64,000 nt of DNA from Haplodiscus bocki (taxonomy: Eukaryota), in contig OZ296648.1 of NCBI GenBank assembly GCA_965655095.1, positions 22,506,001 to 22,570,000 on the forward strand, written 5' to 3'. Position numbers and translations under genes: made by a program. The notes beneath the pieces are model-generated. The model did no database searches and was not told the DNA's origin. It was given only the letters and a program-made list of their open reading frames with translations. Position 1 is the stretch's first letter. Each line of letters opens with the position of its first letter. This document shows positions 8,600 to 45,433 of this stretch, one piece after another.

Positions 8600-8799
8600 N
8601 NNNNNNNNNNNNNNNNNNNNNNNNNNNNNNNNNNNNNNNNNNNNNNNNNNNNNNNNNNNNNNNNNNNNNNNNNNNNNNNNNNNNNNNNNNNNNNNNNNNN
8701 NNNNNNNNNNNNNNNNNNNNNNNNNNNNNNNNNNNNNNNNNNNNNNNNNNNNNNNNNNNNNNNNNNNNNNNNNNNNNNNNNNNNNNNNNNNNNNNNNNN
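8600..8799. other. Assembly gap (200 N)
   Basis: Run of exactly 200 N; a round placeholder length, so true distance is unknown. Confidence 0.99.
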
Positions 8800-14896: not shown

Positions 14897-17511
14897 GTCT
14901 TTTGGGGCAACAGATGTATCCGTCAACGACTCGGTGGTGCGACTGTATGTATGTTTGTAACCTTATTTCATTGAGCGTTTTCTCGAGTGCGCTTTATACC
15001 TGGTTTTTTGTGAACAACAAAGATTTTTTTGGCTATTTTCTTGCTAATCCTGTTTGCTTTGGGCTGGAGTTGGAATTCGATAGTTAAGTTAGATTCCCAA
15101 AGCCGGAGTAAAACTGTTTTTTTTTTGCGATTAAGTAAACCATTTGCTTGGTTAGAAGAAACAAAAACTAAAAGCTTCGCTGTGCGAGCAATCATTAGAA
15201 ACTGAAAATGTTAGAAAGACTAAAAGTCGATATTGCGTTCCTCGCTGAAATCTGAAACTGTTTTGCGAACCACAGTTTTTTTGGAATCGCGATTTATTTT
15301 ACCTGAAGGTGGCTGAAATTTAGACGTAAGTGAGTAAAACATTGTTGGTTGCAAGTTTCCGACCGACGTAAGGTCGACCTCGAGTTATCTTTAATTATCA
15401 AGATTTCGTTGCTTTTACTTGTGCCTTAATTAGTCAAGTGGCAAGACGGGACTTTAATTCTTGCGTCACCGAAGTCCCTCCCTATAAAGGATTCTTTTGA
15501 GTTCTGTGTTGTGGTCCACTGGCAACTGGATTGTAGGAAAAAGAGCTACTGTAGTCATAACTTTATTCAACCCGTTTCCAAATGGTTTAATTTTACTGAA
15601 TTTAGGGAGGTGTCTAGGAATAAGAAGAGGAATTCACTTTACCCCGGACGGGTATATATTGTTCTCTGAAAGAAAAAGCCCGCTTGGACCCTGGTCTGCC
15701 AGAGGCTGATTGAAAGCCGTGAGCCCGAGTCAGTAAGGTACCAACGTAGCATCTCCCTGCCACGAACGAAGCAAAACTTCCAAGGTCTGCAGTACCGGCT
15801 GGTGCATGGTTGTGAACTGGACGTCTCGTTCTTATCCCTATGGGTGCAGAGTAATTTCTGTTCGATATTTTTTGGATAGTTTCTCGCAACAGATACTAGA
15901 TCTAACTATTAAGCGGGTATAACTGTTTATTTCTGCTAAGGAACAATTAGTTCCGCTTTCTGGTCTTTCTGTAGAGTAACTCCGAGAATTGGTATACCCC
16001 GGAGTGCTCTCTCAATTAACCACTCTCCACCAACGGGATTTTTGAGTACTTCAAAGTTTTCGGGTCTGTAATCCTGCACCTAAGGACTATATCCCTCCTT
16101 AGCTGAGAGGTGCCAATTTCACAATTCTCTATTTAAACATATGATGAAATGTGGGAAATTTACCAAGTTGTTCCAATCAAGTAGTTCAATAAAAGCGAAT
16201 AGCTTTGTTCTGAAACAGTTTTGTTTTTTTTTTTTGCAGGAAAATTAGACTTCAAGGATTGGAGAGAAATGCCACGAACCTAACTCTAACAAAAAGGCTC
16301 TCAAATTTCCCCTTGGCTTAGAATATTTCAACTCAACCTAAAATTCAGCAAATCTTGTATCCCTTCTTTTAATGGGGACTTAGAAATTTTGAGCGGAGTT
16401 AGTTTTGACGTCAGTGATAAGTTCCACTTTGGTTTGAACAGTTCTTGATTGTCTTTCAAAAATCGGATTTAACAACCAAATATCGCCACCGACTTCAACC
16501 TTCAACACGACTCCAAAAAAGACTTGAACGTTCTCGGTTGATAGTGTCAAGCAAAGAACGGAATTCATCAAAATACCTGTTATCCAAAATTTCTACAGTT
16601 GTAATAATTGTGTACTCGGCAGAAGTAGCTTCTGGCGCTCTTATTCAATTAATGGAAGCATTTTCTGCTCATAAAAATTTGTTCCGGGGAGAATCTGCAG
16701 ACTGGAAAAATCTGCTGAGTTTTGGGTTTATACAAACTCCGAAACTCAGTAGAATCTTCAAATGTTTAATTGTGGTTATGAGGATTAGCTCAACTTTGGG
16801 ATCAAATCACTATTGCCGTAAAAATTACTGCTAAAATTTCCTCTGCGTACACTCTTCTGTAAAATGAATTTAGGTTAATTTGGGTTCTAGTTGTTCCCAA
16901 GGAACAGATCAGTATGTAACTTTCGAGAATCTTCAAAGTGATAAAAGTAGAGAGAATCGTGACGTCTCGGGGCAAGTGACATACCTTAGAAAAAACTCCC
17001 GACTCTGCCTAGGCTCTGTTCATTTGCTTTTCGCTATCAGTGAAGTTTTGTGTTTCGAATCGAACCTTTGAACTAACGTATTAAATGACCAATCACTCAC
17101 TTCTTTCAAATCCGCTTTTCTCAACAACCGCTTCAAGTGATCCTCATCTGGAGACACGTCTTTTCCCGTTTGGATTTCGACTTCGTACCTGGGCGGGTAG
17201 GCGTTGTAGAGAATCATTTCAGACATGTTCTGATTCAGAGAAGACTTCAGGTGACCCAACTCAGTGGCACGTTTCTTCTTCTCTAGTTTCGGCTTCCATT
17301 TCTCTTCTGATGGCAAAATTTCTTCCATCGGCACATCCTGAAACGTTTGCAAAGGATTGTTTCTTTGTGATGGTAAAAACTTGTTGAATGACATTTCAAG
17401 AACTCATGCTGCACGAAATTTTGCTTGATAAAACATGGAGATTTTGATTGTTTTTTTCGAGAAAAAATAGACTTTTCTTTATAAACATATGTTTCAGAAT
17501 GTTTCGAAATA

Positions 17512-21706: not shown

Positions 21707-21814
21707 TTATCCTTTTGAAGTTTTCATTGAAATAAAACTTGACAGTGCGGGAGTGGGGTTGCCTATTTTCAGTTTCTGACTGATTGCTGATAATGCCACT
21801 AGCGGAATTTTTTT
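21707..21814 (-). CDS. Terminal coding exon of the hidden minus-strand gene (KKIPLVALSAISQKLKIGNPTPALSSFISMKTSKG*)
   Basis: Acceptor cttttcccag|, phase 0 matches the preceding exon, TAA at 21707-21709. Confidence 0.6.
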   Translation of the reverse strand, partial: KKIPLVALSAISQKLKIGNPTPALSSFISMKTSKG

Positions 21815-22689
21815 CTGGGAAAAGTTCAAGAGAGTCAAGTTTAATATGTTTCCAAAATTTTCCAAATCGCTCTTCAGGAAAACTAAAACTCTCTAAATGA
21901 TTTATAAAAAAAACATGACCTCTTTAAATTAGGCCTGACTGAAAACTCCGTGAAGAAATTCATTTATGAGGTGAAATTTCTCAACACTGAAATGATAAAA
22001 CAATTTCACATCGACGAAAATCAATTTGTTTGGCTGAAATGAGCGTTCGTACTGTCCATTTAGTAAAGAATTATTACTTTCCACCTTATTATTCATAATA
22101 TGGGAGGAACATCATTCACTCAAATGGTACGTTTTTTCCTATATGTTTGCCAATTGTGCTTCTGTTTTTACTGATGTTCATTCACATTTGAAAAAAAATT
22201 GAAAACCCTCAAATATTCCTCTTGACCCGTAGAATGCAGTTTTAACAACTCTGCCGAAAAAATTGCCCCGAGTGTCTTTAGGCGCGATTAAACAATTTTA
22301 TTAAATCTGGGCGCTTTAAGCACTAGCTCATTCATTAATGCTTTATTTTGCTTTAATTTTCAATGTTGAAAAAGAATGAATTAGGCGTTTTTTTTTCGCT
22401 TTGCAAGCGTTATGTTGAAAATTTCTGCAGGAGTCAACAATTTTCTTCTCATTTCTGAAATAAAAATCCACGACACTTCAGGAGCAAATCAAAATATTCA
22501 AGAAGAAGTAGCCCTGATGAAAATTATCGACATTGTAGGGATGCAACAATCCACTTCTGAGTGGAAATCTGAGATCTCCAACATCGATTACTTCAACTCT
22601 GGGTCACAAATACTACCATCACAGAGGGGTTCCAATAAGTATTTTGAGGCAAAAAATAGGGTTTTGTCGAACATGTTTGAAAGACTCAC

Positions 22690-22806
22690 CTTTCCAGTTA
22701 TAGAGTCCCAGTAGAAGAATCGTCTTAGTGGTTTTTTGTTTTCGTTAATCTCTCGCTCCTGCTGTTGGTTGAGCTGGACTTGTCTTGTGTAACAACTGAA
22801 TGTCCT
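22690..22806 (-). CDS. Internal exon of the hidden gene (RTFSCYTRQVQLNQQQEREINENKKPLRRFFYWDSITGK)
   Basis: Acceptor tgtattgcag|, donor AAG|gtgagt, 117 nt; only the phase 0-0 frame is open across it. Confidence 0.65.
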
Positions 22807-22864
22807 CTGCAATACACAAAATTCTATCGTTCTTTAACACTCCCAAACCCATGCTTTTTATGAA

Positions 22865-23130
22865 GCTATGAAAACTCGTCTCAAATAACTCGCTGCAACC
22901 CGGGTCGAAATAATGGCCGAAATTTTTCCGGTATAAGAGCTCTAACGGCGGTCAAAATTAGCCCCAGAAGCCGTTATTACGCGGAAAAATAGCAGTGTTA
23001 AAGGCGTTGATCCGGAAAAATAGCGACGTTTTCCCAAAAAAGTTCGACCTGGGAAGCAACTCGTCGAAAATGAAAAGGCGGAAAACTCGTTGAAAGCAGC
23101 TCACCGAATATCCAAAGCAGAATGTTCGTC
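22865..23130 (+). mobile_element. Non-autonomous repeat with AACTCGTCG-rich subterminal motifs; second copy at 30200-30325 (minus)
   Basis: AGCAACTCGTCGAAAATGAAAAGGCGGAAAA (about 23055) matches the reverse complement of about 30250-30280. Confidence 0.6.
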
Positions 23131-23626
23131 ACAAATTAAAAGTCAATTATTTCATTGAAGAAGCGTAACTATCAAAAACGATAAATTTCTGCTGCTCTTA
23201 TTCGTTTCTTCTGCTGCTAACTTTGGAAAAATTCTGCTTTTTCGGCTTAACCGAAAGCATAAATAGAAAAAATTATTTTCACTCGAAGTGACGGACAAGA
23301 TAATCAATTCAAAATCAATGAAATCCGTATTATAATATAAAAAAGTGAGTTTTCAGAGACTCGTTATTCAGTTGATTCCTTTGCGATGCTAGGAGAATAT
23401 TCAAGAACTGAAAATTTCTTTCGACGTCAGCCCCTAAGCCAGCAATCCAAAGAAAACTTTGCGCATAATTTGCAAAAATTGGAAATTTCAGCCTCTGAGA
23501 TGCCCAGAAAAATGCAATATCGAAATTATACACATCGAAATCGGTATTGCAATAAACGATAGACGCCCCAATCCACAAACAATCAATAAATTATTTGAAA
23601 ATTTGGACTGACTCTGTAATCAGAGA

Positions 23627-24440
23627 TGTCGGGTGAGATTTTCAATCGCCGTGTCGGGTGAGGTTCTGAAAGCTTCAGCGTCCTTATTAAGAAGGGTCCC
23701 GTCTACGGACGATAGGCACGGAGACCTGCCGTTGGGTAACTTGCGCCCAGTTGTCTTGGATTAGCTGGTTGAGCAAATGAGTGAGGGTTGAAATCTGCTC
23801 GTTAAGATGTTCTAAATTAGCCTTGATCCTTTCTTTAATTAGCTCAGGTGACATCCGATTGATGTTTCCGTCGACCTCCTTTGCGCCAGGTTTTTCGGAT
23901 AAGTCAGCGGTGTTTTCGGTATTTACGGACATTTTCGGATGTACACTCTGTCTATAAGTTTTGTCAGTTCTAAGAGTCATACAGTCAGGAGAAACGCTCA
24001 TTGTTGAATAGTTTTATATATAATTTGCAACTATTAGTAATGTTGCAACAGGGTAAAGTCTATGGAATTTACGAATGAAAAGGCAAACAGATGTAAAGGT
24101 ATATGTGTGCCGATCTATGGAATAGAGCGTAATGTAGGCCAATGAGGTTTGATGTACATCAATGCAAGTTCACTGATGAATAGCAATGGCTCGGAACTGA
24201 CGAGAAAGGATGAATATCTCTCATTATGATCTGCTTACAGCTGGTTCCCTTTTAAATGAGCAATTGATGCGCCCTCGGCAATCTGGTTAGCGCTTGTTAA
24301 AAAATGTTCGGTTTTGCCTGCTCCTGGACGGATTTGCGCGGTCACGTGGCCAATGGTAAGACGCACTTCTCACAATTAGTTACCTCTGGGAGTTAAATGA
24401 TTAATTAAGATATGAAGCGCCAATCCGTCGCTAGAGTGTC
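23627..24440 (-). mobile_element. Solo LTR containing a 104-codon gag-N-terminus-like ORF (23687-24001)
   Basis: Ends ...CACCCGACA; shares TGCGTCTTACCAT.GG..ACGTG.CC.CG.AAATCC with 42443-43113; ORF contains MTLRTDKTY. 5' boundary approximate. Confidence 0.6.
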
Positions 24441-24619
24441 AAACGCATAATATTTATGCAAAGTAGTGAAAAAAACTATGAAAAAAGTGAATTGGTGTCA
24501 GTTTTCGTTCAACTATTGGAAATACTTTTCAAATGAGACGTAGGATTGACATTTAAGCTTAGGCTACTTGAATGAAGGTATGTGGTACTTTTTACAACTT
24601 TTAACGGAAAATTTTCGTG

Positions 24620-25420
24620 TGCTAGATTGCCGAGATAGCTCGATTCAAACAGACATCGAGAATTAATTGTATACTTGATGTGTCAGTTATTTCGGTTGGG
24701 GGCGTTTCTACTGTTACAGTCCGTCCGGGGCATTGCAAATTGTCTAATGAACTAATACGTCTGCTGTTTCTGAGTCTGAAAGTAGTCTGCACTGAGACAT
24801 CAAAAAATGTCTGCATTAGCGCCATTACAATTAATTAGATGAGTAAGCATCAAAAAATATATATTTTACGTCACCAAGTAAATTTTTATTCACAGACATC
24901 CGAAAAACACTGACCTTTGGAGTAACTGTATCATGTTTATACTTTCGCGTGTTGTATCCATCGGTTGCTGTCGGTAGCTTAGTTACAGATGTGTTATTCA
25001 CTGGTTTTCTAACCTGGGAGGATGGAAAGCCTTTTATTTCGATAACTTCCCCAAAATGCAATCTGCTTGTATTCTATCTATTGCCAACATGCGTCTCTCT
25101 TCTTCTATTGAGAGTTTTCGTATTTAACTAGGGCAAAGTTTACTATGCGGCAAGAAATCCAGACGGATGTGGCACAGACTCAGCTCATTTGTTCAAATAT
25201 TAGTCTCAATAGCAGAGTTAATGCATTACAAGAGGCAGTTGTAATAATGCAAGTTTCCGGCCGAAGCTTACCAGTGTCTGTTAAAGTCCTAATATGCTTT
25301 TTCACCTTTGAGGTTCAGTCTGAATCTAGCGCCAATCTGTTTCAAGTTTCTGGTTGTTTCTGCGTTGTCTTTGGTGTATATTGAACTGCTAATTTTTGGA
25401 ACGCTCAGCAAAGCATTACT
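24620..25420 (-). pseudogene. Degenerate coding-like stretch, unidentified
   Basis: Consecutive minus-strand ORF fragments (24622-24825, 24831-25061) and a stop-interrupted upstream frame; no motif recognised. Confidence 0.25.
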
Positions 25421-27489
25421 CAATTTCATTTACTACACAATGTGTTATGTAAAATATAAGTGCTTTCATATCGGGGGAAAAGCGGAAGTAAAATGAAATA
25501 CTTTTCTTTTTTATTATTGAGCATTTTTTGGCTACAGAACTTGCATTAAGATGTTATTTACTATAGCTGCTGCATGCATATATAACAGATACGTAATGTT
25601 GAGGATATGTAGATGGCTAAGTATTTCCATCATGCGAGGATGAAAACTGATGTCCGAGATTAAGTCAATCTTTCTTGGCGTTAGGCGATTGTTCGGACAA
25701 CCCAAAAACTATGAACATCTTTTCTGTGTTTTTCAAGGTGCTTTAAGGTTTCCACGAGACAGTCGCAATCCATCTCGAAATTTGATCAATGCGTTTTTTA
25801 ACTTTTTTAAGTAATTGAAGCTTTGATTTTCCGTTTCTTAAGATGGCTTGGAAGTGGTATATAGCATCCTAACAAAAATGAATCATCAGCTTTAAGTTTC
25901 TTCCGTACCGTTCAATGAAGCAAGTCATTTATTTGCTCAAACATACAGGAAAAGATATTCAAGTTCTCACAACTCACGGTTTCTGTTCCAGAAACTCTAT
26001 CGTTTGAAGGACGTGATCGCTATCATGCAAAGCTGTTCTTTTTCTCAAAAAAACTCAAGAAAGGAAATCTGTAACGTCTGTAGAAAAACACAATATTTCT
26101 ATACTCTACATGAACATTTGTCGGTTCAAAAGGTTTCGAGAGGACTGCTTTTTTCTGTTTTCCCGATAAAATTCCCACTTTTGCATTTTTCAAAAATCCA
26201 GTTTTTCAAAAATTTTAAGGTTTGTGTGAGCTTCCAGCAATCTTGTTTTCAAAACTTTATCTAATCAAAACCTTGCCTGCATGTTCTAGCAAAAAACTGC
26301 TGGTTAAATTCTGGAACTTCAGGTTGACCTAACTCCACGGAGAGTTGAACGCTACCACCATCTCAACTCAAAAATTTTATGTTTACATGACAAATAATGC
26401 CTGACTAAAAATCGCATGACTCGTGAATAACTAATCATAAAACAAAAAATTCAAACTTTTCAATCATGTTGGGGCAAGGAGATGCTTTTGAAACCAAACT
26501 GATTAAACTATTCCAAGGTTTTCAAAGTTTAGCAGATAGTATGAAACCCTAATTAATGGGATAAAAGTGACAAACAATTTAGTAAGGTGTTCTTTAAGTA
26601 AAAGAAAAGCAACAGTTGAGAGATATTTACGTGGAAACTTTCAAAAAGTGTGGATTGCACTCATGAAAAGTGGGCGAGTTGATGCTCTGCAGTTTTGAGG
26701 CAACAAGTACAGAAAGTGACCTTTCGGTTTTGTAAAACATCAAAATTGCCCCAAAAAGGCGCGAAATCTTTGCTTTTTTTGCCAGAATAGTTTATAAATC
26801 AAAATCAAAGCTGACAAACAAATGACTCAGGAATAATTCGTTCAGTTTAATGAACTGAATTTATCAATGAGGTAAGATTTCAGAAAAAAATCAGATTTCC
26901 CTATGAAAATATGGCCTAACTCAAGTACTTCGAATTCGAATTTGAATCTAACAAAAAATACAGTAAATTCAAATCAAGCTCAGAGTGTCAGTTAAGAAGA
27001 GCCACCGTAGTGCCCGGAAAAATTTTTGGTATGAGATTGGGCTGGAAATCTGTATGTAGGTTCAATGGGTAGGTGAAACTGCGAAACTATGTCAATAACA
27101 TCACGTGACTTTCAACTATGGCACTTTAAATGTTAAAGCAAGGTCAAAAGTAGAGTTCATTATCTCACATTGTTTCAAGGGTGAAAATATGCTATAATGC
27201 ACGGTATCGGTGCCATCAGATGCTAGGCAGTTGCTATGGCAATGTTTGGCCTCAAACCAAATATCATAACTCTCATCCATAAAACGAAATTTTTCAAGTT
27301 CCTAAGTGTTTCGCCGCAACAATTTCGGAAATCTTTCTGCTTTATTGTTGTTTGTAGTCCATAGTCTAAAGTTACCGATCAGTATAAATTTAGCCTCTAG
27401 AAAAGTATTTCTTTAGAGAAATGTCAGATCTCATCCATTTGAGGTTGCTCTTTTTTAATTTTTTGCGCCTTTTTCATAATATGGAAAGA

Positions 27490-27935
27490 AAATCATGTGC
27501 GAACGTTTTTTTACCCGATGTTTGACAATTGATGTCTGATGTTGCGACACTTTCTGACCGTGAATTTTTTTTACCAAATTGTAGCAAGTTTGCCGTAGAA
27601 TGGGACTGAAATAGTAAGATTTCTCAAAACGTACTAACTTTGCATTTTTTCTGAAAAAATAGATTGGTTTTCTCGAAAAAACTTGAATCTTCCAGAAATC
27701 GCTAATTGTGTCAAAATTTCTGTAGAATTCTTATCAAATGGTATTATTTCTTCAAAGTGTCTTTTCCACCTTATATGTGAGGTTTTTAAGGGAAAATTAA
27801 GGAAATTGCCAAAGTGGGAATAATCAGAAAATATGTTGTAGAAACACAGCATTCTGAAAAAAACGCTTTCTCCTAAAAAGGCATCTCTTCCAAAACGGGA
27901 AAGTGGAAATTATACCATTGGCAGCGGGCCGTCTT
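27490..27935 (-). mobile_element. Copy of the 'AAGACGGCCGG' non-autonomous interspersed family
   Basis: Reverse complement begins AAGACGGCCCGCTGCCAATGGTATAATTTCC and aligns by eye for several hundred bp with 40087-40500. Confidence 0.75.
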
Positions 27936-30327
27936 CTTTAGTATCTATTGTGAAATTTCTGTGAATTAATTGTGAGCCAAATATCACGCTTCTTTCGATT
28001 TCCGCTTCTCCTCACAGACCATTTCGGTTAGGAATAGTGATTTTCATTTAGGTTACACCTAGTAATTTTCGCTTTTTGCCTTTTTGGCGCGAATTTGGCG
28101 CGTTAATTGAGTCCCGAAAATTTTCGTTTTATTCGATTGCAGCAAAAACGTCTGGTTTTTGTTGGTAACTATTTACAAGGATAAAGCTCTTTTGCAAGAT
28201 TGTTTGCTTATGATGCCTGCCATTTTGATTTAGATCATAATTTGATGAATCATAATCATGATTTATGATGTGCAAAAACAAGAACCTTTTGCTTTTTTGC
28301 GTGCATTAGACCTGTGAATTACAGTAGTGTTTTAAAAGAAGGGAAATCCTACGCGTAAATTGACCAAATTTAGACATCAATATCTTTGGAACTAGAGAAA
28401 TGGCTAGTTTTGGTAGAAAGAAAAGTTTCCTCGATTTTTGTCTAGTTTAGAACCGTTTTTGCTGCAACAATTGGGGATGAATACAGCAAAAGTTAGAAAT
28501 GGCGATTTCGAGAAAAATTCGAACAAATTTCATATTTTTTTGATAATTAAAGGTCTCAATGAAAATTTTTTTGGACACAAGTTGTAAGTAAATTTTCTCT
28601 TAAAAATCTTAAAACCATTAAAATACCTGGTTTTCAAAAAACAATTCAAATTGCGCACAAAACTGTTGTTTTCACACTATCAACCTTGAAGTTGCATGTT
28701 TTGAATTAAATGTTGAGATTTGTGTTTTGAAAATTTGCGATATCTATTTAAATTCAAAGTATTTCTTCAATCAAAATACATCACGGAATTCAAGCAGTTC
28801 TGGGAAATTGTTTTGATTGATAATTTTTTGACGAAATTTTTTCTAAATTGGTGAAACTTCAAAAAAACGACAGAGGTTCCCAAAATTGGAGAACATTAAC
28901 CAATGAGATTGCGAATTGAGAGCAAAGAACATTATCTTTTCGGCTGAAGAGCGTCAGTGAACATTCTTAAGCACCATTCTCTTAAAACACTACTGTAGTA
29001 TCTAAGCTTTAAACTGACAGTGTCCGTTTTTATACATATGTAGAGACAACCCTCTAGTATTACAACTCAAAACATCGACCAAAATACATGTATTTTGATC
29101 GAAATTGCCGCACAACACAAATTTGCTGTTCATTTTTAATAAAGGTAACAAAGGTAAAAAGGCTGAAGATATTGGTCGTTCAAAAAAAATCAATTATCTG
29201 CTAGGAGTAGAATTACAATATTTTATGTTCCGTATAAAAAACCATGTCGGTGGAAAATTTCTCCGAAAAATAAACCATGGTCACGCTCAATCTTCTATTT
29301 TATTTAAAAAGTATTCGGAAACACTAATAGGCTCGGAGGTAGAGGCGTTTCAGAAAAATTCGAGAGATATCGCGATTTTTGCGCAAAAAAGGCAAAAATA
29401 AAAAGCACAATTCATTCATCCGCCAAAAAGATATCAATAGGGCATTCTCGTTTCTCTCCAAGCCCTCAAAGAATCAACGAATCAACTGCAAACAGCAAAT
29501 TATATCAGCGAAAGGAATTTTGAGAAAGTCGAAGTAATCTGATATTTCGTGGGTCGGCACAAATGCCAGTGCAGTGAGACCACGCAGGTTTCAGTAATGT
29601 GGTTTTTGAGAGCTTTTTTTAAGTATTCTGCCGTTAATTCCCATTGCTATCAAATAAAGCGACAGATATCCCGTTGGGATAGATTCGCGATCGATTATGT
29701 TACTATAGAGTTGACGCCGTTACTTCCATGGGATTTCAGTGGGGGGAAAATTGTTTGTTTCAAGTTATCTTCAGATAAGCTACCATTGACTACTTAACTT
29801 TCGCAGTATCAGAAAATTCAAGGGAAATGCTTCCAAGAAGGCTTTGTGTGGTGTGGGATTGGAAGTTGCAGCCAAAAAAGTGATTTCTATCAACTCTCTC
29901 ATTGCTTCATTCTTGGCGGCATCAAGGGCAAGGGCACGTGTGTGCTCATTTATTCTTTTTTTTGTATTTCAATATTAATTGTTTATTGGTATAAGGATTT
30001 TTTCTGGCAAAAATGATTTTCGTCTTCGAGCATTTTCGAACCACGTAATGTGGAGATATAACCAATTGAAACGTCTGAAAGTAGAAGGCCATGGACGTTA
30101 AAAATATACTAACTAACTACGGTTCAATCTAAAATTCAACTTACGCTTTTTCATAGTTATTGCCCTATAATCCTCGCAGTTTAACCAAATGTGAAAATTA
30201 CGACAAGTTTTTCGCCTTTAATGTTCCGACAAGTTGCTTTTCGACAATTTTTCCGCCCTTTAATTTTGGACGAGTTGCTTGCGACGAGTTGTTGGTGACA
30301 AGCCATTTGCGACGAGTTTTTCATATA

Positions 30328-31459
30328 CACTAGTGTGATTAAAGAATCGGACTCCTTACTGTGAGAAAAGTTTCGGACGGTATTCTTCTGAGCAAATAAA
30401 TTACTAATTAACAGAAATTAGTTTTGAGAAACTTAATTCTCGGCAAATACAGTTGACAAGTTTCATAAAATTAGTTGGCTTAAAGAGTTTGAGGATGCCT
30501 AATTGCAGTATTGAAGCTAAACAAAAGGTAGTTTCACTTTACCACAAAGGATATAGTTTATTTTCAATTTCGAAGGCTACGTATGTTCCAAAAAGCACGT
30601 GTTGGGATATTGTTCGAAGATATAATTCCCGCGGACATGTCAAAAATCGAAAAAGTCCGGGTAGACCGAAAAATTTGGATTCTAAAGAGGAAAAACGTTT
30701 GATAAATTTATCACAGAATGATCCCAAAAAAATTCAACTCAACTTTTATGGCATCTTAACCCGAAAAAAATTGTTCCACAAGTTTGATACGAAGAATATT
30801 AATCTCCTATAATTTGCATGCCAGAATTGCTATCAAAAAACCCTATCTTACGGCGAAAAATCGACTTGCCAGAAAAGTTTGGGCAAAAGAGCACGCTTTA
30901 CTTCCCAAAATTTTCTGGCAAAATGTGCTGTTTTCGGACAAAACAACTCTGGAACTGCACCCTAACAAACGAGTATTAGTCCGTCGTTTACCCAATACCG
31001 GAATGGAAAAGAAGAATTCATCGGAAACCCAAAAATTTGGCGGAAAAATATTGATTCGATCCTTTCAAAGACTTGGTTTTCCGAAAATGGATTAGAAATT
31101 CTCGAAAACTGGCCACCGAATTCACCAGACATCAATATTATCGAAAATGTTTGGAGTCTGCGAAAGAAAAGAGTTTTCCAAAGACATCCCAAAAATATTG
31201 AGGAATTTTGGGCATTTTGTCAAGAAGAATTCAAAAGAATACCTTTGGAGTACATTCAAAACTTATATAACTCAATTCCAGATAGATTAAATAAAATTGT
31301 CCAGTGTAATGGAAAAAACATTAAATTTTGAGTTTTTTTATTGTTAGTTTCAATGGTTTTTGTATTTATTTTTTGATAGAATTGCTTCTGCAGGAGATTT
31401 TATTGATTGTCCGAAACTTTTCTCACAGTAAGGAGTCCGATTCTTTTATCACACTAGTG
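30328..31459 (+). mobile_element. Tc1-family DNA transposon, 1132 bp, internally deleted
   Basis: 51-bp TIRs CACTAGTGTGATTAAAGAATCGGACTCC...TTCGGAC with one mismatch; TA target duplication at 30326-27 and 31460-61. Confidence 0.97.
30495..31331 (+). pseudogene. Tc1 transposase pseudogene
   Basis: N-terminal HTH with SPGRPK linker, RIAIKKPYLT..NRLARKVWAKEH, VLFSD (first catalytic D) and, in another frame, WPPNSPDINIIENVW (catalytic E). Frameshifts; the segment carrying the second catalytic D is missing. Confidence 0.93.
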
Positions 31460-32209
31460 TATCCCCTTTCATACTAAGTGACCAAAGAGCTTTAAATTTC
31501 AGAGCGGAGTTTAAACAGAATATTGTGAGCGAATTATCAAAAGTTGTGTAGATGAGGTTTTGTGGGCTCATTGAATCAAATCGCATGATCGTATTCGATG
31601 TTTTTGTTACAGTTTTTCATTATAGGAAATAAAGTGCGAATCTTATCATTGGTGACACCTCGTTACACTGAGACTAAACTTGAACCAGCCTTTGCAGAAC
31701 CCATTTTAATGAAATAATGTTTAATGAATAACGCAACCAAATAATCAGTAGTTGTTTGTTCCAATAAGCCAACACAAATTTCAGTTAGTTTCGCTGTGCC
31801 AGAAAATGAAACATTATAACTCTGTGTTCAACAGAACTATATGACCCGAAAAACGATACATGTTTAAAATTGGAAACTATCAGACAAGCTATGGTTGGTA
31901 TATATTTTAAGGCGGTGAAACTTCATTATATCTCGCATGCTAATCATCGGAAGTGACACCTGAATTGAATAAAAAAGGGCAAAAATGACCATATTAGGTC
32001 CAGATTATGAAAGTTGTCTAGAGTTGTTTAACCGAGACTATGCAATTTTCTCTGTTTTATATGCAATTTATGTTTGATAGAAGTGTCATTATTTCGGTTG
32101 ACTGACAAGTAAGGCAAAAAATTTCTCAAGCATTCTGGCGTCTTGTTAGCATTTTTGAGAGCTGAACAAATATTATCGTTTTTTTTTTGGGTCACCTAAT
32201 GTAACTCAC

Positions 32210-32298
32210 CCTCAGATCAGGACCCATTAAGAAGTCTCTGTACTGCAACTTCTGCAAACTGTGTAGCCTGATCGCATCCCAAACCATTTCTGCGTCTT
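32210..32298 (-). CDS. Internal exon of the hidden gene (KDAEMVWDAIRLHSLQKLQYRDFLMGPDLR)
   Basis: Acceptor ttttgtttccag|, donor AGG|gtgagt, 89 nt; the only open frame starts in phase 1 and ends in phase 0, matching both neighbours. Confidence 0.7.
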
Positions 32299-32324
32299 CT
32301 GGAAACAAAATGAGCCGAACGATC

Positions 32325-33128
32325 TACACTGAACTTTTTCCTCAGGCAAATCAGATAGGAACTCAGGTAATTTTACCTGACGGACTCAGGTTAAAAGAGA
32401 CTACCTATAGACTACCTACTTATAAGTATACTCGAAATTACCTGAGAATCAACTGTGAATCGAGAATTGTAGATCTGGGATATAACCACTTGAGAACTCA
32501 GGTATATAAAAATCTCTGGTATTTTCAGCTGAGTTCTCGAGGTAATTTCAACATTATTTTTTCATTCAATGTGCCTCAACTAAGGGTATTTTCCTTAAAA
32601 TAGGTTTTTATCGAGGTTTGGTTTTGTGAAGTCCGCTGTTAGCAGACTTCATCTCTTTGTTGCACTATACAAGGTCCAACTTCTCTGACTCAAGCAATTG
32701 TGAAGGCACAGTCAAAAATTTTCTCTGCTATTTGCTATAGAAGATGAATTGAAGTTCATTTTTTTTCGGATTCGTGTTCTGAATTGAACTTTCTGTACCA
32801 ACTCTTCAAATAAAATCTCTTTTGCCAATCAGGCTCTGGTCATTTAAATTTCCATTGTAATGAATGGCGGACTAAAACATGGTTTCGTTTGAGAAATAAA
32901 CTAAAAAGACCCCTTGATTCAGAAGGATTCAGAATTTTTTGCTCAAGGACTACGTTAGTAATTTTTTGAATCACCACCTGATTTAACTCAGGTAGTTCAA
33001 ACTACAAATCGAAATTCCTCGAGAACTCAAGTAAAGACCCTGATTTTTAGATTTAATGAGGTGACTCGGGTAAAAACAGCCTGAGTTAACGTTTCAGGCT
33101 AATCTGTTTCCAAGTTACTTCAGTCTAA
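32325..33128. mobile_element. MITE-like element with AACTCAGGTA/TACCTGAG subterminal motifs, inside an intron
   Basis: Motif clusters at 32340-32545 and 32970-33100; loose inverted ends TACACTGAA / TTCAGTCTA. Confidence 0.5.
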
Positions 33129-33179
33129 GGTTCTGCTTTCTTATCCTCAGTGGTAAAAATGAAAATTAGAGAAACTAAC

Positions 33180-33283
33180 TTTTGTCAGATTTATCACTGA
33201 GCTTGAGCGCATCTGGGGCGATTGTTCTGGTGGGAGGAGCTTCAGGATTGATGATGTGACTGGACCAGAAAGGACCAAATGTT
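33180..33283 (-). CDS. Internal exon of the hidden gene (TFGPFWSSHIINPEAPPTRTIAPDALKLSDKSDK)
   Basis: Acceptor tttgttctag|, donor AAA|gttagt, 104 nt, GC-rich island; phase 2 to phase 1 frame is open and compatible with 32210-32298. Confidence 0.65.
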
Positions 33284-33769
33284 CTAGAACAAATAATTTT
33301 CAAGGTTATTTACTTTATTTCTTTACGCTTTCATTTATTTTACGCTTCCATGATTTATGTAGAAAGGAGAATTATTCAATGGCTAGTGCCGTTTCTTTTT
33401 TCAGACGGATTTTGACAACTTAGAATTTGTTCAGTTGTTCACTTCTAATGAGAATTAGTGACAAGCCCTCAGTGTTTCCGTTTTTTAATTTGAAGCGTTA
33501 TATCTCAAAGCGTATTGGTCGAAGCGTTGTCGTTTTTTGAAAACCTGTACGGCAAGGCTGCCAATGACCTTGTCTCAAACTTTCGCCGTCTGAAATTTTT
33601 CGCCGAGAAGTTATAAGCGAAAATAAACTGAACACGCCGAAATTTTTTGAGGCAAATTGTCAAATTTGACAAGCATCGGAATCATGCGCATACGAAAAAT
33701 GCGCATATTCGAGGAATCGATTCAAAATCAACCTATCAGGATGACGTACTAGATCGAAATTTTTTTGGG

Positions 33770-34300
33770 AATTTTCTCGCTGGAGTTTCGGCGGAAAATT
33801 TTGCGAAAAAAACTCGAAATTTTCCTGTTTTCCGACAATGTTACCAACTGGAGAGCGTGCATTTGAATTAGTTGGTTTGAATCACTCATTGAATATTTTT
33901 CAGTCGTCAAGTAGACCTTGTGGTGCGTCAGGAACTTTTTTTCGTTTTGTTTCGGCGGTCTTTTAGCATAAATTTTTGCAAAAAAGTTGGAAAAATTCAT
34001 GTTTTCCGAGGATGTCACCACCTGCAAGGCGTGCAACTACTTTGGCTGTTTTGAAAACCTCGTTGATTAACTGTCAGTGGTTGAGTAAAACTTATGATTG
34101 GTCAGGAGTTTTTTTGGTTGTTTCTTTTTTGGCGGTGATTTAACGGAGAGTTTTGCGAAAAATTCAAAAGTTTCGTGTTTTTTGGTCTTTCAACCAGCGT
34201 GGAAGCCCGGAAAAAACTTGAGTGGTCTTTCAAACGTTGATTCAACTTCGTAAAACTACTAGAAGTTACCAATATTCAGAAAAAAATTCCCCGTTTTTTT
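33770..34300. repeat. Diverged ~175-bp tandem repeat, about 3 copies
   Basis: TTTTGC(G)AAAAA...TGTTTTCCGA recurs at about 33826, 34000 and 34176. Confidence 0.65.
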
Positions 34301-35049
34301 GGCAGTTTTTTGAGAAAGTCAGAGTCGACTTTCATTCATTTTTTTTGGATTTTGTTTTTTTTTGACGGGTTTTTACAATGTCTGGAAAGTCTTTAGTTAA
34401 TTCTGTTCAGTAAAAACCGAAGAAAAACCTTGCTAAACAATTCATTTTATGGGAACCTACATTTCTTTTTCCGGCGGAATGAACTTCCCGACAGTGAAAA
34501 CTTTGATTTAAAGAAGTTCCTTCCCTACGGCTTTTTTTCCGTTTTTACTACTAATTTGCTACTTTCACATCTCTTGTACTTTCAACCACTGCCTCAAAAG
34601 TTTTTAAACTGCCTGAATGAAGTCTAATTTTTTTTTAATTTTTACGAGGGATAACGAGAAATTTCACTGATTTTTCCGACAGTCAAAAGTTTGATTAAAA
34701 AATAATTTTTTTTCTTGAGGATTTTTCCGTTTAACTGAAGCCGATGTTTTTCAGAAATTGCTATCTCGTCAGAAGTTACATCCAGTTTTTTGAGCACTGA
34801 TTCAAATTGTATCATGTTGTGTTTTGCGCTAATCTATCCATTGAGTTCGCTGTTCAGGAAGGAATAGCTATAAAAGGATTTTCCCAAGTCGCAACATTTC
34901 TTGCATATATTAGATGCATTTCAGGTAAAGTTCAACGGCTGCAGGAAAAAGCCTTTCCTCAGAAGTCTTTGGAACGATCTTAATTTTTAGGTGCATGTAT
35001 TTTTGGCCCATGCGCAACGTTCGTGATGTTATTTTAGTGATGTTATGTT

Positions 35050-35348
35050 ATTTCTTTCCGGCTCATTTTTCATATATGGAAGGAAATTCATTAGCTCAAC
35101 AATCAGACCCAAGCTGAATATTTTGATTTTTCTTTCTTTTCGAAAGAGTCAGCCTGATTTGATAGTCCTTCTAAGTGAATACTTTTTCTTGCCAGAATTT
35201 GACTTCTTTAAAAAACAATCAAAAGTGTTGAGTCTTGATGCATTTTTACAAATTTTACAGACACTTTTTCGTTCCAGCTACTGCCTTTAAACGTTTCTTC
35301 TCTGATTTGGAAATTGGAAAATATCCCGGAGTTAGCTGGGCGTCTTGT
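35050..35348 (-). mobile_element. Copy of the 'AAGACGGCCGG' family
   Basis: End AAAATATCCCGGAGTTAGCTGGGCGTCTTGT is the reverse complement of the family terminus. Confidence 0.6.
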
Positions 35349-35460
35349 TATTTTTCGCCGCATATGAAATATGCAGGAAAAATTATTCATTCAGTAGGGT
35401 CGTTTTTCTTTTTTTTTCTTTTGAGTCCAAAATTGCCAACTCTTTGTATTCGAAAATAAA

Positions 35461-35529
35461 TGACAGCAGTGAGGTTAGGAAAACAGGGTTCTAAAACAGT
35501 AGGTCCAGGTTCGAGTCTCTGTCGTGCCA
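35461..35529 (+). pseudogene. tRNA-like (SINE-head-like) degenerate unit 1
   Basis: B-box GGTTCGAGTC, ends TGCCA; stems poorly paired. Confidence 0.45.
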
Positions 35530-35571
35530 ATTATTTTTATGATTTCGCTTACTTTTGTCAAAAATTCCAAT

Positions 35572-35645
35572 GGTTACCATAGCACAGTGGGTAGGACAAC
35601 ATGGTCTGGAAGATGTAGGTACGGATTCGAATCCTAAACTTTACC
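35572..35645 (+). pseudogene. tRNA-like degenerate unit 2 (possibly Gln-CTG derived)
   Basis: A-box-like TAGCACAGTGG, B-box-like GATTCGAATCC at tRNA spacing, ACAT/ATGT stem around CTG; acceptor stem broken. Confidence 0.5.
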
Positions 35646-35670
35646 TACAATTTTAAACATAAATATTAAG

Positions 35671-35942
35671 ACGGAAAATCGCGATACCGCCCCCCTCTTA
35701 TGCATGAAATTTTTCGATGCCCGAAATTAGCGTAAAACTAAAGGGTTCTCCTGCGAAATTTTTCGGCACTGTTAGACAAAAAATTTTCGACGGAAAAACG
35801 TCATATCCCCGCCCTCTTATCCATAAAATTTTTCGATACCCGAAATTTTCTGAAACATTGACGGGTTCCCCCACGAAATTTTTCGGCGCTGTGAGTTTGA
35901 AAACTTTCAACGGAAAATCGTGATACCCCTCTTTTGCATAAA
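35671..35942 (+). repeat. 119-120-bp tandem repeat, about 2.3 copies, inside an element ending at 36092 with the 'AAGACGGCCGG' terminus
   Basis: ACGGAAAA.CG at 35671, 35790 and 35910; terminus GCCAGTGCTAACCGGCCGTCTTGT at 36069-36092. Confidence 0.85.
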
Positions 35943-37258
35943 GTATAGAAATCAGTGTTGGAATTGATGTTTGTAAAAAAACCTTTGAAAACCAAATTCA
36001 AAACAGTAGTTTCGTTTTTAACCGTTTATAAAAGTTGATCAAAATATTTGTAGTTGCTTGAAAAATATGCCAGTGCTAACCGGCCGTCTTGTGCAATATT
36101 CTTCAAGGGAGCTGCTACTTATAAGGAAACATTTTCTGTCAGCGCACAAAGATTAAAAGCTGCCACTGAATTGAAGAATGTTCAAAAGAGTCAAAAACAA
36201 TGAGCAGCTTTCGGAATCTGTTTCACTATTTTATTTAGAAATCTACCAAGAAAAGTTGATCATTGTCAGAAAGTGCGCACGAAAAATAAACTTCTTCGTT
36301 ACGTGTTATTTTGCATTTGCATAATTTCCTTCATTAAGTCACAGTGATGTTTTAATTGTTTAGCAAGGGGCGCAGTGACGTATTGGAAAATGCCCCTATA
36401 TACAAAACTGAATCTGCAAAGAATGTGACAACTTTGATCAAAATTAGCTTTTTTTAGTTTTATCTTTTAAATTTGGTCTTTTCACCGTGAAAAAAAATGA
36501 ACTTTTTCATGAATTAAATTACAAAATTCGACATTTTAATCACCCAATTTTATAAATGTTCCAGAATTGCATACTGGAGGTGTCCCAGAGGCTTCAGGTG
36601 ATTCATCAATTTTAAAGTTGATAGTGTTGAATGAATCATTCATTTTGTCCCGTTTTGGTAGTTTTTGAACTGGTCAGTCTATCTCAAGTGCACCCGAGTA
36701 TTGTTAATATATTGGGGTAATAATGTAGTTTATTGTGTGGTAAAGTACAAAATCGCAATTTCAGCAAATTGAAAGGAAAGAACGTTTCTTTACGGCGTCT
36801 GTATCGTGTTGTGTTGGTATGTGTGCAAAATTTGCTGATCCGTAAATTAATTGTTACTACATTAGAAGCTCCATAATGCTCCATAATAGACCTTAGGCTA
36901 ATTGCTTAATCATTTTTTCGAGTTCATATCTCCATCATATTGGCATAAAAATCTTTTTTTTTGTCTACGCGCTACCTCCAGCAAACTGAGTTAACCACAA
37001 AACCCAGAAATTCAAACTACATTAACTCAGAAACTCAAAAGATTTGAATCGTTGCAAAATTGTGTCGTTAATGTAACAAGAACTTGAAGTTTGCCCACAG
37101 ATTAGAACACTATCAATTGATTGAAAAAAAATACGTCAAAGAACCTACAGAAGATGATATTCTCTACGGGGTGACCTTATTAAAGATCACTAGTTGCTTA
37201 CACCCGCGTAGGGACTCCGTGTTGTTGCTGAGCTTCTCAAGAAAAACGGACAACTCAC

Positions 37259-37310
37259 TCACTCATGCTCCGCGGGTCACTGCATCCATTAGTGGCAGTA
37301 AAAACAGGGC
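37259..37310 (-). CDS. Candidate upstream exon of the hidden gene (PVFTATNGCSDPRSMSE; the ATG at 37266 could be the start)
   Basis: Acceptor gttcag|, two tandem GTGAGT donors 4 nt apart; the distal donor gives phase 2, matching 33180-33283. Confidence 0.45.
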
Positions 37311-43780: not shown

Positions 43781-45433
43781 TCATATTTTCCACACAAAAC
43801 CCAGTCTTTTCGCAGTATTGGCCGTTTGCCCAACTTTCGTTTCTACACAAGCCGGGGCCTGGTAGTTAGGCATTTCGTTTCCATACCTGTCAGCTGATTT
43901 ATAACTGGGTCTCAAGTTTCCATCGCCGTCAAAAATTGGCCCATGTCCACCCCCAAACCCATCATTGGCTACCTTTACTAGCGGGTACAAATTTTTAGCG
44001 CCCCTTTCCTTTTCTTCCGTTATAACTTCTTTCACGTACTTCGTAAACTGTTGGGCTTCCAGACGGAGGAGCTCATTGTTGCGATGATCAACTTTCAGAA
44101 TTTCTTCCTTCGCTTTTTCCTCTTTCTCCTTCCTCTCCTTAGTTTGGGCCAGGTGAATTTGTTTCAGAGCCTTCTCATGCTCGAACCTTTCTCGTTGTTT
44201 CTTCTCTTCCTCTTCCTGGAAAAGTTGGTCGGCCATAATCCTAGCTTGTCTCATTTCCAAGTTTTCAAGTTTTTCACGCTTTTCTTTTTCTTCCCGGAGT
44301 TTTTCAGTTTCGAGTCTGTGCTTGTTTATCGACTCAAACATTTCCATCTGTTGTTTCATTTTTTCCGCGTCATCTTTCGCGTCTTTTTCTTCTTTTTCTT
44401 TCAACGCGTTGAAAACTCTGTCCTCCTCGTCGCTCTTCTTCTGTCTCAAAATATGACCCAACTTTTCAGTTTGTTCATCTCTGATTCGAATTTTCTCATT
44501 CAGCAGATCGTGTTCTCGTTTGGCTTTCAGTTTGGCCATCTCTCGTTTAGCCAGAGCAAACCTCCGAATCCTATCGTCAGCTTCTTCTTCATTTTGCCTC
44601 TGGATCGCTTCTAGAAGAGTTTTGTTAGCCAGCGTTTCTCCGTGTGCCTTCAAAAGTTGCCGTTTTTCTTCGTCTTTAACTTTCTGTACCCGAACCATCT
44701 CATCATTATATTGTCTCAGAGCATCTTGGATCTCAATGCCCTCCATACGGTCTCTAATTTTTTCACGATCTTTGTCCAACTGCTTTTTGCCGATTTGTTT
44801 GACCAAATATTGTCTATTGTCTTCGTTTTGTTTGCATCGCTCCAAAGTTTTTACTCTTTCGTTTTCGATAAACTCGTTCAGCTCCGCTTCGGCTCTAGTG
44901 ACATACTTCGCGTCGGCATTCGCTTCGGCTGATTTGATTCGTTGCCGCAGTTTTAACTGCTCGTCACGTTCCCGTAATACTTCGGTCAAAGTCAGCGCGC
45001 TGTGAAGAGTTTTTACTCGATCTGTCTTCCAGTACTGAAGTTTCTTGGCCTCATCCAAAACTTCTTTTCGTCTTTCGGCTTGATATTTTTCCTCCTCTAT
45101 ATCCAAAAGCTTCCGATCTTCTTCCTCTTTCTCGTCTCGAAGTTTTTTGGCCTGTAACTTTCTAGCTCGGGTGCCTGCAATTGTATTTGTCCAAGTGCTT
45201 ACAAGCTTTCGACTTTCGTTTTCAACTTTTTCCCTGTGAGCTAAATTCGCTTTTGCGATTTTTTCGGCTATCGGTTCTTCGGAAAGCTGGTCTGTAATTC
45301 TCTCCCATTCTGACCTTGGTAGAATGGTGACTTGGTTTAAATTGACCTTTGGCACCTCGGCACTTGCTTCAAGCATTCCGGGATAACTTTGTGTTCCCTG
45401 TTTTTTGGTTTTATAAATAGCGGTCGTAGCCAT
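43781..45433 (-). CDS. CFAP210: Cilia- and flagella-associated protein 210 (CCDC173)-like, trichohyalin-plectin-homology coiled-coil protein, 550 aa, single coding exon
   Basis: Only long intact ORF. Motifs QVTILPRSEWERI, WTNTIAG.RARKLQAKK.RDE.EE..R..LDIEE, QYWKTDRVK.LHSAL.LTEVLRERD.Q, C-terminal GGGHGP..G.LRPSY and KRLGFVW match my recollection of CCDC173/CFAP210; long E/K/R coiled coil. Confidence 0.9.
   Translation of the reverse strand: MATTAIYKTKKQGTQSYPGMLEASAEVPKVNLNQVTILPRSEWERITDQLSEEPIAEKIAKANLAHREKVENESRKLVSTWTNTIAGTRARKLQAKKLRDEKEEEDRKLLDIEEEKYQAERRKEVLDEAKKLQYWKTDRVKTLHSALTLTEVLRERDEQLKLRQRIKSAEANADAKYVTRAEAELNEFIENERVKTLERCKQNEDNRQYLVKQIGKKQLDKDREKIRDRMEGIEIQDALRQYNDEMVRVQKVKDEEKRQLLKAHGETLANKTLLEAIQRQNEEEADDRIRRFALAKREMAKLKAKREHDLLNEKIRIRDEQTEKLGHILRQKKSDEEDRVFNALKEKEEKDAKDDAEKMKQQMEMFESINKHRLETEKLREEKEKREKLENLEMRQARIMADQLFQEEEEKKQRERFEHEKALKQIHLAQTKERKEKEEKAKEEILKVDHRNNELLRLEAQQFTKYVKEVITEEKERGAKNLYPLVKVANDGFGGGHGPIFDGDGNLRPSYKSADRYGNEMPNYQAPACVETKVGQTANTAKRLGFVWKI

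Follow-up and report, generated by a model that had tools for sequence, protein, structure and literature searches.

Do five short segments on the minus strand of an AT-rich, repeat-rich stretch of acoel DNA belong to a genuine spliced gene, or are they one of the many chains that such DNA would offer to a patient eye? In the window, the 64,000 nucleotides of the Haplodiscus bocki genome analysed here, a sequence-only reading had joined the segments 37310-37259, 33283-33180, 32298-32210, 22806-22690 and 21814-21707 into a gene. Re-reading of the sequence found this anatomy exactly as claimed: an AG stands before each segment, the first four are followed by donors (GTGAGT in three cases and GTTAGT in one), the phases run 2, 1, 0, 0, and a TAA closes the last. 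Two codons are split between exons, GA/A (E) and A/AA (K), and exons 3 and 4, like exons 4 and 5, are joined in phase 0. Exon 2 (104 nt) contributes one nucleotide that completes the incoming codon and one that opens the next, and ends at the GTTAGT donor; exon 3 (89 nt) ends at AGG/GTGAGT; exon 4 (117 nt) is in phase 0 on both sides; and exon 5, as proposed, consists of 35 codons plus the stop. It had also been said that in two of the exons the matching frame is the only open one. The frame is indeed the claimed one, and the count has to be corrected, since this holds for three exons (1, 3 and 4).

In-phase chaining is by itself not above chance. Candidate exon-frames in the region number 2,247 for internal and 1,002 for terminal exons, and the best five-exon in-phase chains in every other 18-kb tile reach summed splice scores of 29-45, versus 22.0 here, on a generic metazoan splice matrix. 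The only sites to stand out are the donors of exons 3 and 4, which rank in the top 0.07% and the top 0.01% of the window's GT dinucleotides; on the generic matrix nothing remarkable marks the donors of exons 1 and 2 or the acceptors of exons 1, 2 and 4. With candidate exons in the thousands, some chains are bound to be in phase, and the whole model could be an artefact of reading by eye in AT-rich, transposon-rich DNA, in which case the match to a relative that we describe below would reflect a shared repeat. We regard this as highly improbable, and it fits the data poorly: the four exons tested (2-5) each match only themselves in the 1.5-Gb genome, and the matching protein, P0001, apparently shares its contig with an orthologue of the neighbouring gene CFAP210. 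The same single-copy status across the genome led us to rule out a transposon origin of the exons. The introns are another matter, and the suggestion that transposable elements had inflated them was borne out to the extent that the 9.4-kb intron 3 contains a young Tc1/mariner-like DNA transposon (30323..31462, plus strand). Its inverted ends of about 54 bp match each other in inverted orientation, its ORF remnants match Pfam HTH_SB / HTH_Tnp_Tc3_2, and at least 39 copies with 92-98% identity are found in the genome. A scan of all four introns for additional cassette exons returned none that would preserve the frame and combine decent splice sites with coding potential.

Three other observations place the locus above chance: exons 2-5 are single copy, exon 4 has a conserved counterpart in a relative, and the codon usage of exons 2 and 3 is of coding type. 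Codon LLR, trained on 27 kinase ORFs of the same genome, is 0.161 per codon for exon 2 (top 2.3% of chance candidates) and 0.251 for exon 3 (top 0.6%). CFAP210, taken as a control, falls in the top 2%; exons 2 and 3 use codons in the manner of that gene. Exon 5 is at null level (-0.031 per codon, top 31%), and so is exon 4.

Exon 4 forms the conserved core of the model, with the motifs TFSCYTRQVQ and KKPLRRFFYWDSI-GK. Used as a query against 1.84 billion representative proteins, it gave one match, P0001 (word search E 2.8e-12; phmmer E 3.5e-12), with 29 of 39 residues identical (74%) and no indel. The similarity is confined to 22815-22684 and ends at both splice sites of the exon: the alignment adds two residues encoded by the splice consensus on each side, for 32 of 44 identical in all, and P0001 is a read-through ORF call, for whose 85-aa tail, derived from intron sequence, the window holds no counterpart. 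Conservation of coding type, which the sequence-only reading had named as a way of checking the gene, was seen in a relative, with borders at the splice sites, for exon 4 only; a word search with exon 5 found no match.

Could the conserved 117-bp block be a conserved non-coding element or the exon of a non-coding RNA, open by chance, with the remaining segments a chance chain? A chain that does not exceed chance and an exon 4 with null-level codon usage would be in keeping with this, and the comparison with P0001 uses amino-acid data alone, in which the observed identity is compatible with drift if nucleotide divergence is 0.15 or less. At greater divergence, 29 of 39 identities without a stop become unlikely under neutral drift (P = 0.02 at 0.2 and 1e-4 at 0.3). 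Moreover, conservation starts and stops at the AG and the GTGAGT, and 39 codons are aligned without an indel. Changed residues cluster, 6 of them in a row (permutation P = 0.002), and a variable linker lies between two invariant blocks. The substitutions are also more conservative than those of a random simulation (P about 0.05). An Rfam scan of 16000-46000 matched no family, and exons 2 and 3 are coding-like independently of exon 4. We therefore consider a non-coding origin of the block improbable. The proposal that a real gene lies at this locus emerges as very probable, given a conserved exon 4, single-copy exons 2-5 and coding-like exons 2 and 3.

The reading that we favour, and hold to be probable without being secure, is a real protein-coding acoel gene of five exons, 6.5 kb downstream of CFAP210, with its ATG at 37266 and a product of 141 aa. 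The exons would be joined as given, with translation starting at this ATG and the 3' end of the gene at exon 5. The model is weakest at exon 5, whose null-level codon usage, together with the lack of a relative in the word search, would suit a different arrangement in which exon 4 does code for protein but its transcript is assembled otherwise, with another last or first exon or with exon 2 skipped. A substitute last exon could come from the ORF at 17394-17023, a single-copy, coding-like frame with a score of 0.12-0.16 per codon and a phase-0 acceptor (TTTCAG/G) at 17337. However, with an ATG of its own and a GTGAGT donor inside it, this ORF fits a separate downstream gene; a search of the protein Atlas with it gave no match. 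Skipping of exon 2 could arise at the end of exon 1, where donors stand in tandem (GTGA/GTGA/GT) and use of ATGA/GTGAGT, after 37263, would keep the frame from exon 1 into exon 3. Several observations argue for the arrangement as proposed: no phase-0 acceptor closer than 2 kb to exon 4 is better than that of exon 5, exon 3 has the best of the five phase-0 donors found from exon 4 up to CFAP210, and exon 2 has the highest coding potential of 37 possible upstream partners for exon 3. Coding potential thus ranks both exon 2 and exon 3 first as partners. We judge a differently assembled transcript to be unlikely, yet a serious candidate. Downstream of exon 5, an ATTAAA is found at about 80 nt and an AATAAA at about 440 nt.

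The upstream neighbour, CFAP210 (CCDC173; 43781..45433, minus strand), encodes an axonemal microtubule inner protein and is present here as a single intronless ORF of 550 aa. It carries a Pfam TPH domain (E 2.2e-14) and is 31-39% identical to named CFAP210 orthologues and 99, 86, 69 and 68% identical to further ones. The position of the ORF, its domain and its orthologues all agree with the earlier placement of the candidate gene on the same strand, 6.5 kb downstream. We also considered the five exons as a 3' end of CFAP210 itself and rejected this, since the only decent donor of the ORF (after 43887) leaves 2 nt where exon 1 needs 1, the alternative frame meets a stop, and the close orthologues, at 549-552 aa, are of the same size as the single ORF. 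P0001 and P0003, the CFAP210 orthologue with 86% identity, are each reported from an ENA contig of 123,563 bp, and, judged by this identical length, the relative of exon 4 apparently lies on the same contig as CFAP210 in this second species. Exon 4 changes about twice as fast as its neighbour (26% versus 14% changed residues). Because of this fast evolution, relatives one step more divergent, in which CFAP210 is 68-69% identical, would fall below detection, and distant kin are beyond the reach of a fast-evolving query of 39 aa. Metagenome contigs searched with P0001 for related loci yielded none.

What kind of protein would such a gene encode? The 141-aa product predicted from the ATG at 37266 has a net charge of about +9 (14 K and 9 R versus 8 D and 6 E), and no signal peptide, membrane segment or recognisable domain was found in it. 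The protein had not been recognised at first sight, and our searches, all run on single exons of 29-39 aa, likewise gave no family for any exon: Pfam, exon by exon, returned none at E <= 10, the PDB searched with exons 2, 3 and 4 gave no relative and no match to a solved axonemal chain, and the protein Atlas searched with exon 4 gave no match. An HD-domain or cyanamide-hydratase-like identity, guessed from an "AIRLHS" motif, was dropped, having no Pfam or PDB support. The locus resembles the taxonomically restricted, or orphan, genes of animals in being a short, multi-exon, fast-evolving ORF without per-exon matches in Pfam, the PDB or the Atlas, and in having its sole detected relative in a close species with conserved synteny.

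As to function, we would guess at an intracellular protein, small, basic and helical in part, that may bind an acidic partner. Since linkage to an axonemal inner protein is conserved, the leading guess, offered with a good deal of doubt, is a protein specific to the lineage and associated with microtubules or the axoneme, and it draws on composition and gene neighbourhood only. The small basic microtubule inner proteins of axonemes are alike in size, basic charge, aromatic motifs and linkage to a CFAP gene; exons 2, 3 and 4 have no sequence match among the solved axonemal chains, and the likeness is one of composition and neighbourhood only.

The finding is of an ordinary kind. The gene is probably fast-evolving and possibly clade-restricted, and if confirmed it would add one more such protein to the acoel gene set and offer a practical example on which to check the gene models of a genome whose proteins the large public protein collections lack. 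A cheap hypothesis for a ciliated model worm also arises from its linkage to a ciliary gene, which is conserved. The locus also holds a lesson for AT-rich, repeat-rich DNA, in which in-phase splice chaining is weightless alone and cross-species conservation bounded by splice sites is what counts.

The 5' end of the gene raises a question of its own. Exon 1 as first proposed spans 37259..37310 on the minus strand, and its frame closes two codons upstream of the acceptor; with the in-frame ATG at 37266, the first 14 residues of the original reading are more likely 5' UTR than coding, and the probable coding part of the exon is only 37266-37259 (ATG AGT GA). A short upstream ATG, in a different frame, is present at 37289. 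The AG before exon 1 could be the point of spliced-leader addition, or exon 1 could be the first exon, with a 5' UTR; the joining of an upstream coding exon at this AG would be less likely than either. Candidate acceptors would start the exon at 37310 or 37279, 44 nt or 13 nt before the in-frame ATG, and neither scores high on the generic matrix (-1.1 and -3.7). Either of these AGs, that at 37312-37311 or that ahead of 37279, may take up the spliced leader and not act in cis. That the acceptor of exon 1 is possibly a trans-splice site follows from the presence of the published 32-nt spliced leader of Symsagittifera roscoffensis (PMC9911081) some 1,400 times in the genome (1,387 matches, 695 + 692, versus 0 for the control). 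In the two copies that we inspected no GT follows the leader, and these are therefore not simple SL RNA genes; a search within the window found no copy. In S. roscoffensis, 30% of genes are trans-spliced and 70% are not, and genes have a mean of 3.2 introns, which average 2.5 kb (PMC9911081). The present gene is like the trans-spliced genes of that species (PMC9911081) in having an AG acceptor before the first in-frame ATG and a frame closed upstream, in a genome with hundreds of exact leader copies, and differs from them in that its candidate acceptors are not strong on the generic matrix.

Taken further, the gene might encode an acoel-specific small basic axonemal protein tied functionally to CFAP210, with both derived from one primary transcript. 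We consider this combination very unlikely. In such an operon-like arrangement, leader addition at 37310 or 37279 would resolve the primary transcript of CFAP210 and its neighbour, and the pair, if real, would have an unusually long spacing of 6.5 kb; to our knowledge, operons are not established in this phylum. Trans-splicing at the AG 37312-37311 would leave the out-of-frame ATG at 37289 ahead of the proposed start.

We show that the five minus-strand segments proposed in the sequence-only reading as a hidden gene (exons 1 to 5, at 37310-37259, 33283-33180, 32298-32210, 22806-22690 and 21814-21707) have the borders and frame that it assigned to them, with an AG before each and a GT after the first four. 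The donor is GTTAGT for exon 2 and GTGAGT for the other three, two junctions split codons (GA/A for Glu and A/AA for Lys), junctions 3/4 and 4/5 fall between codons, and a TAA closes exon 5. In three exons (1, 3 and 4), rather than the two counted earlier, the assigned frame is the only open one. The only N run of the window (8600-8799) lies far from the locus. Given the 3.2 introns per gene and mean intron of 2.5 kb reported for S. roscoffensis (PMC9911081), a span of 15.6 kb with four introns makes an ordinary gene here.

In-phase chaining alone is not above chance. With an approximate, generic metazoan donor/acceptor matrix, we counted 2,247 internal and 1,002 terminal candidate exon-frames in the 18-kb region; the chain scores 22.0, versus 29-45 for the five-exon in-phase chains that dynamic programming finds in every other tile of the window on both strands. 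The verdict must therefore rest on other evidence. No donors other than those of exons 3 and 4 stand out (within the top 0.07% and 0.01%, respectively, of all GT), and strict thresholds leave only five exon-like minus-strand candidates, these two exons included.

Exon 4 is real, and is the firmly supported exon of the model. It is single copy in the 1.5-Gb genome, and both a word search using the surrounding 81-aa open frame (residues 10-49 scored) and a phmmer search of the bare exon against 1.84 billion representatives returned one protein, P0001, a 131-aa ENA entry that is a prokaryote-style ORF call reading through the exon into the intron. By BLASTP, 29 of the 39 exon residues are identical without gaps, and the match takes in these residues plus two splice-consensus-encoded residues on each side (32/44 identical). 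TBLASTN of P0001 over the whole window finds 22815-22684 only (E 5e-19), with no match in the window for its 85 intron-derived residues. The ten changes in exon 4 are clustered (permutation P = 0.002), with a run of six flanked by two invariant blocks. At nucleotide divergences of 10%, 20% and 30%, respectively, 41%, 2% and 0.01% of neutral-drift simulations kept an identity of at least 29/39 without a stop. As the intron next to it can no longer be aligned, we take neutral divergence as high, which suggests that exon 4 is under protein-level constraint.

The upstream, same-strand neighbour CFAP210 (43781-45433, minus strand) is one intronless 550-aa ORF with a TPH domain and named CFAP210 orthologues; no AATAAA occurs within 400 nt of its stop. 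Its nearest proteins are ENA calls at 99, 86, 69 and 68% identity, and the top named ones reach 39% (Ciona) and 38% (Tubulanus), as expected if public protein sets lack the proteomes of this phylum. The close relatives are likewise called as single ORFs of 549-552 aa, in keeping with an intron-poor state of this ciliary gene in the lineage. Across the genome, many protein-kinase domains are encoded within unbroken open frames of 400-2,400 aa, so that a large share of genes would have long exons or be intronless. P0001 and the CFAP210 protein at 86% identity (P0003) each have one ENA contig as their reported source, with a length of 123,563 bp in both cases, and, on the basis of this shared figure, the linkage of exon 4 to CFAP210 looks conserved in the relative.

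Exons 2, 3 and 5 are likewise single copy across the whole genome. We scored codon usage as a log-likelihood ratio per codon, with a model trained on 27 long kinase ORFs of the genome (41.7 kb) and the window as noncoding background, and ranked it among about 20,000 chance AG..GT open segments. The control, CFAP210, scores 0.19 (top 2%), exon 3 scores 0.25 (top 0.6%), exon 2 0.16 (top 2.3%), exon 1 in the originally proposed frame 0.14 (top 5%), exon 4 0.00 (top 21%) and exon 5 -0.03 (top 31%). Between exon 4 and CFAP210, only five phase-0 donors score at least 3 with an open frame; that of exon 3 ranks first, and in coding score exon 3 is far ahead of the other four. Of 37 possible partners of exon 3, exon 2 lies closest and leads in coding score; its GTTAGT donor scores low on a vertebrate-type matrix. 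In introns 1-4, no additional exon that would keep the frame combines acceptable splice sites with coding potential. The description of the introns as inflated by transposable elements is fair, since the 9.4-kb intron 3 carries a Tc1/mariner-like copy (about 30323-31462; 1.14 kb, with inverted ends of about 54 bp) whose relatives in the genome number at least 39, at 92-98% identity, and a 16-kb query gave 21,902 first-look candidates in the genome. ORF remnants of this copy encode transposase HTH domains. The family is young, and other copies have about 150 bp between two matched blocks that this one lacks.

The interpretation as a gene is partly supported, with exon 4 firm through its P0001 match and single copy and the other exons plausible. 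Searched exon by exon, Pfam gave no family at E <= 10, PDB gave no relative of exons 2-4 except a chance coiled-coil match, and the Atlas search with exon 4 gave no match; these were single-exon searches with queries of 29-39 aa, so the blanks are weak evidence. Exon 4 is also evolving at roughly double the pace of CFAP210 (26% versus 14% of residues changed) and, with such short queries, relatives at the next step, where CFAP210 is 68-69% identical, would go undetected. This is probably a real, fast-evolving, perhaps clade-restricted gene; unannotated orphan-type genes are a known kind, and as one of them it is of modest interest. Exon 4 has no 100% self-match in the protein collection and the CFAP210 protein at 99% has an ENA source only. 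The collection thus seems to be without transcript-derived proteins of this species, and nothing follows on expression.

The exon translations contain 14 Lys and 9 Arg versus 8 Asp and 6 Glu, the N-terminus is not hydrophobic, and no hydrophobic stretch is long enough for a membrane span. Inspection by eye shows helix-like stretches in exons 3-5, together with a Lys-, Ser- and Thr-rich tail. The predicted product is a small soluble basic protein that would bind an acidic partner. The leading specific guess, which we consider unlikely, would be a lineage-specific microtubule- or axoneme-associated protein, a suggestion prompted by the apparently conserved linkage, in two species, to the axonemal inner protein CFAP210.

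At the 3' end, exon 5 is proposed solely because, among phase-0 acceptors up to 2 kb from exon 4, its own is the best. Further downstream, a single-copy 124-aa frame on the minus strand (17394-17023) has coding-like codon usage (0.12-0.16 per codon), its own ATG, a TTTCAG/G acceptor (17337) shortly ahead of an in-frame ATG and, near 17100, an AAAGAA/GTGAGT donor inside the frame; it has no relative in Pfam, PDB or the Atlas. A further unannotated gene probably lies here on that strand, with this frame as its first exon; the frame might instead be an alternative last exon of the proposed gene.

At the 5' end, the frame of exon 1 closes two codons upstream of its AG. The first 14 residues of the originally proposed peptide are probably untranslated, given an in-frame ATG at 37266, immediately ahead of the exon 1 donor, and a possible leader acceptor upstream; from this ATG, 8 + 104 + 89 + 117 + 108 nt give 141 codons and a stop. 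The start codon lies within tandem donors (ATGA/GTGA/GTGAGT, 37259-37270, minus strand), the upstream one of which would splice exon 1 in frame onto exon 3 (M-K-D-A-E...) and could yield an isoform that skips exon 2. Trans-splicing is reported for 30% of S. roscoffensis genes (PMC9911081), and in such a species the leader acceptor may be the AG that precedes 37310 or the one that precedes 37279; neither is strong, and use of the latter would remove an out-of-frame upstream ATG. The GC content of the window, about 36%, agrees with the value of 36.7% given in PMC9911081. The 32-nt S. roscoffensis spliced leader (PMC9911081) matches the assembly at 695 + 692 places with at most two mismatches, all 100 of the places listed being exact, and its reversed sequence gives 0 matches. 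We infer that the animal is S. roscoffensis or a species very close to it. Two copies examined (L006, C1:25472551-25472582, and L007, C1:36585249-36585280) are followed by TTTCG and TTTTT rather than a GT donor, which suggests that many of the roughly 1,387 copies may be retroposed leader-bearing RNAs or parts of repeats, not SL RNA genes. At L006, a second, partial leader copy lies 90 nt further on.
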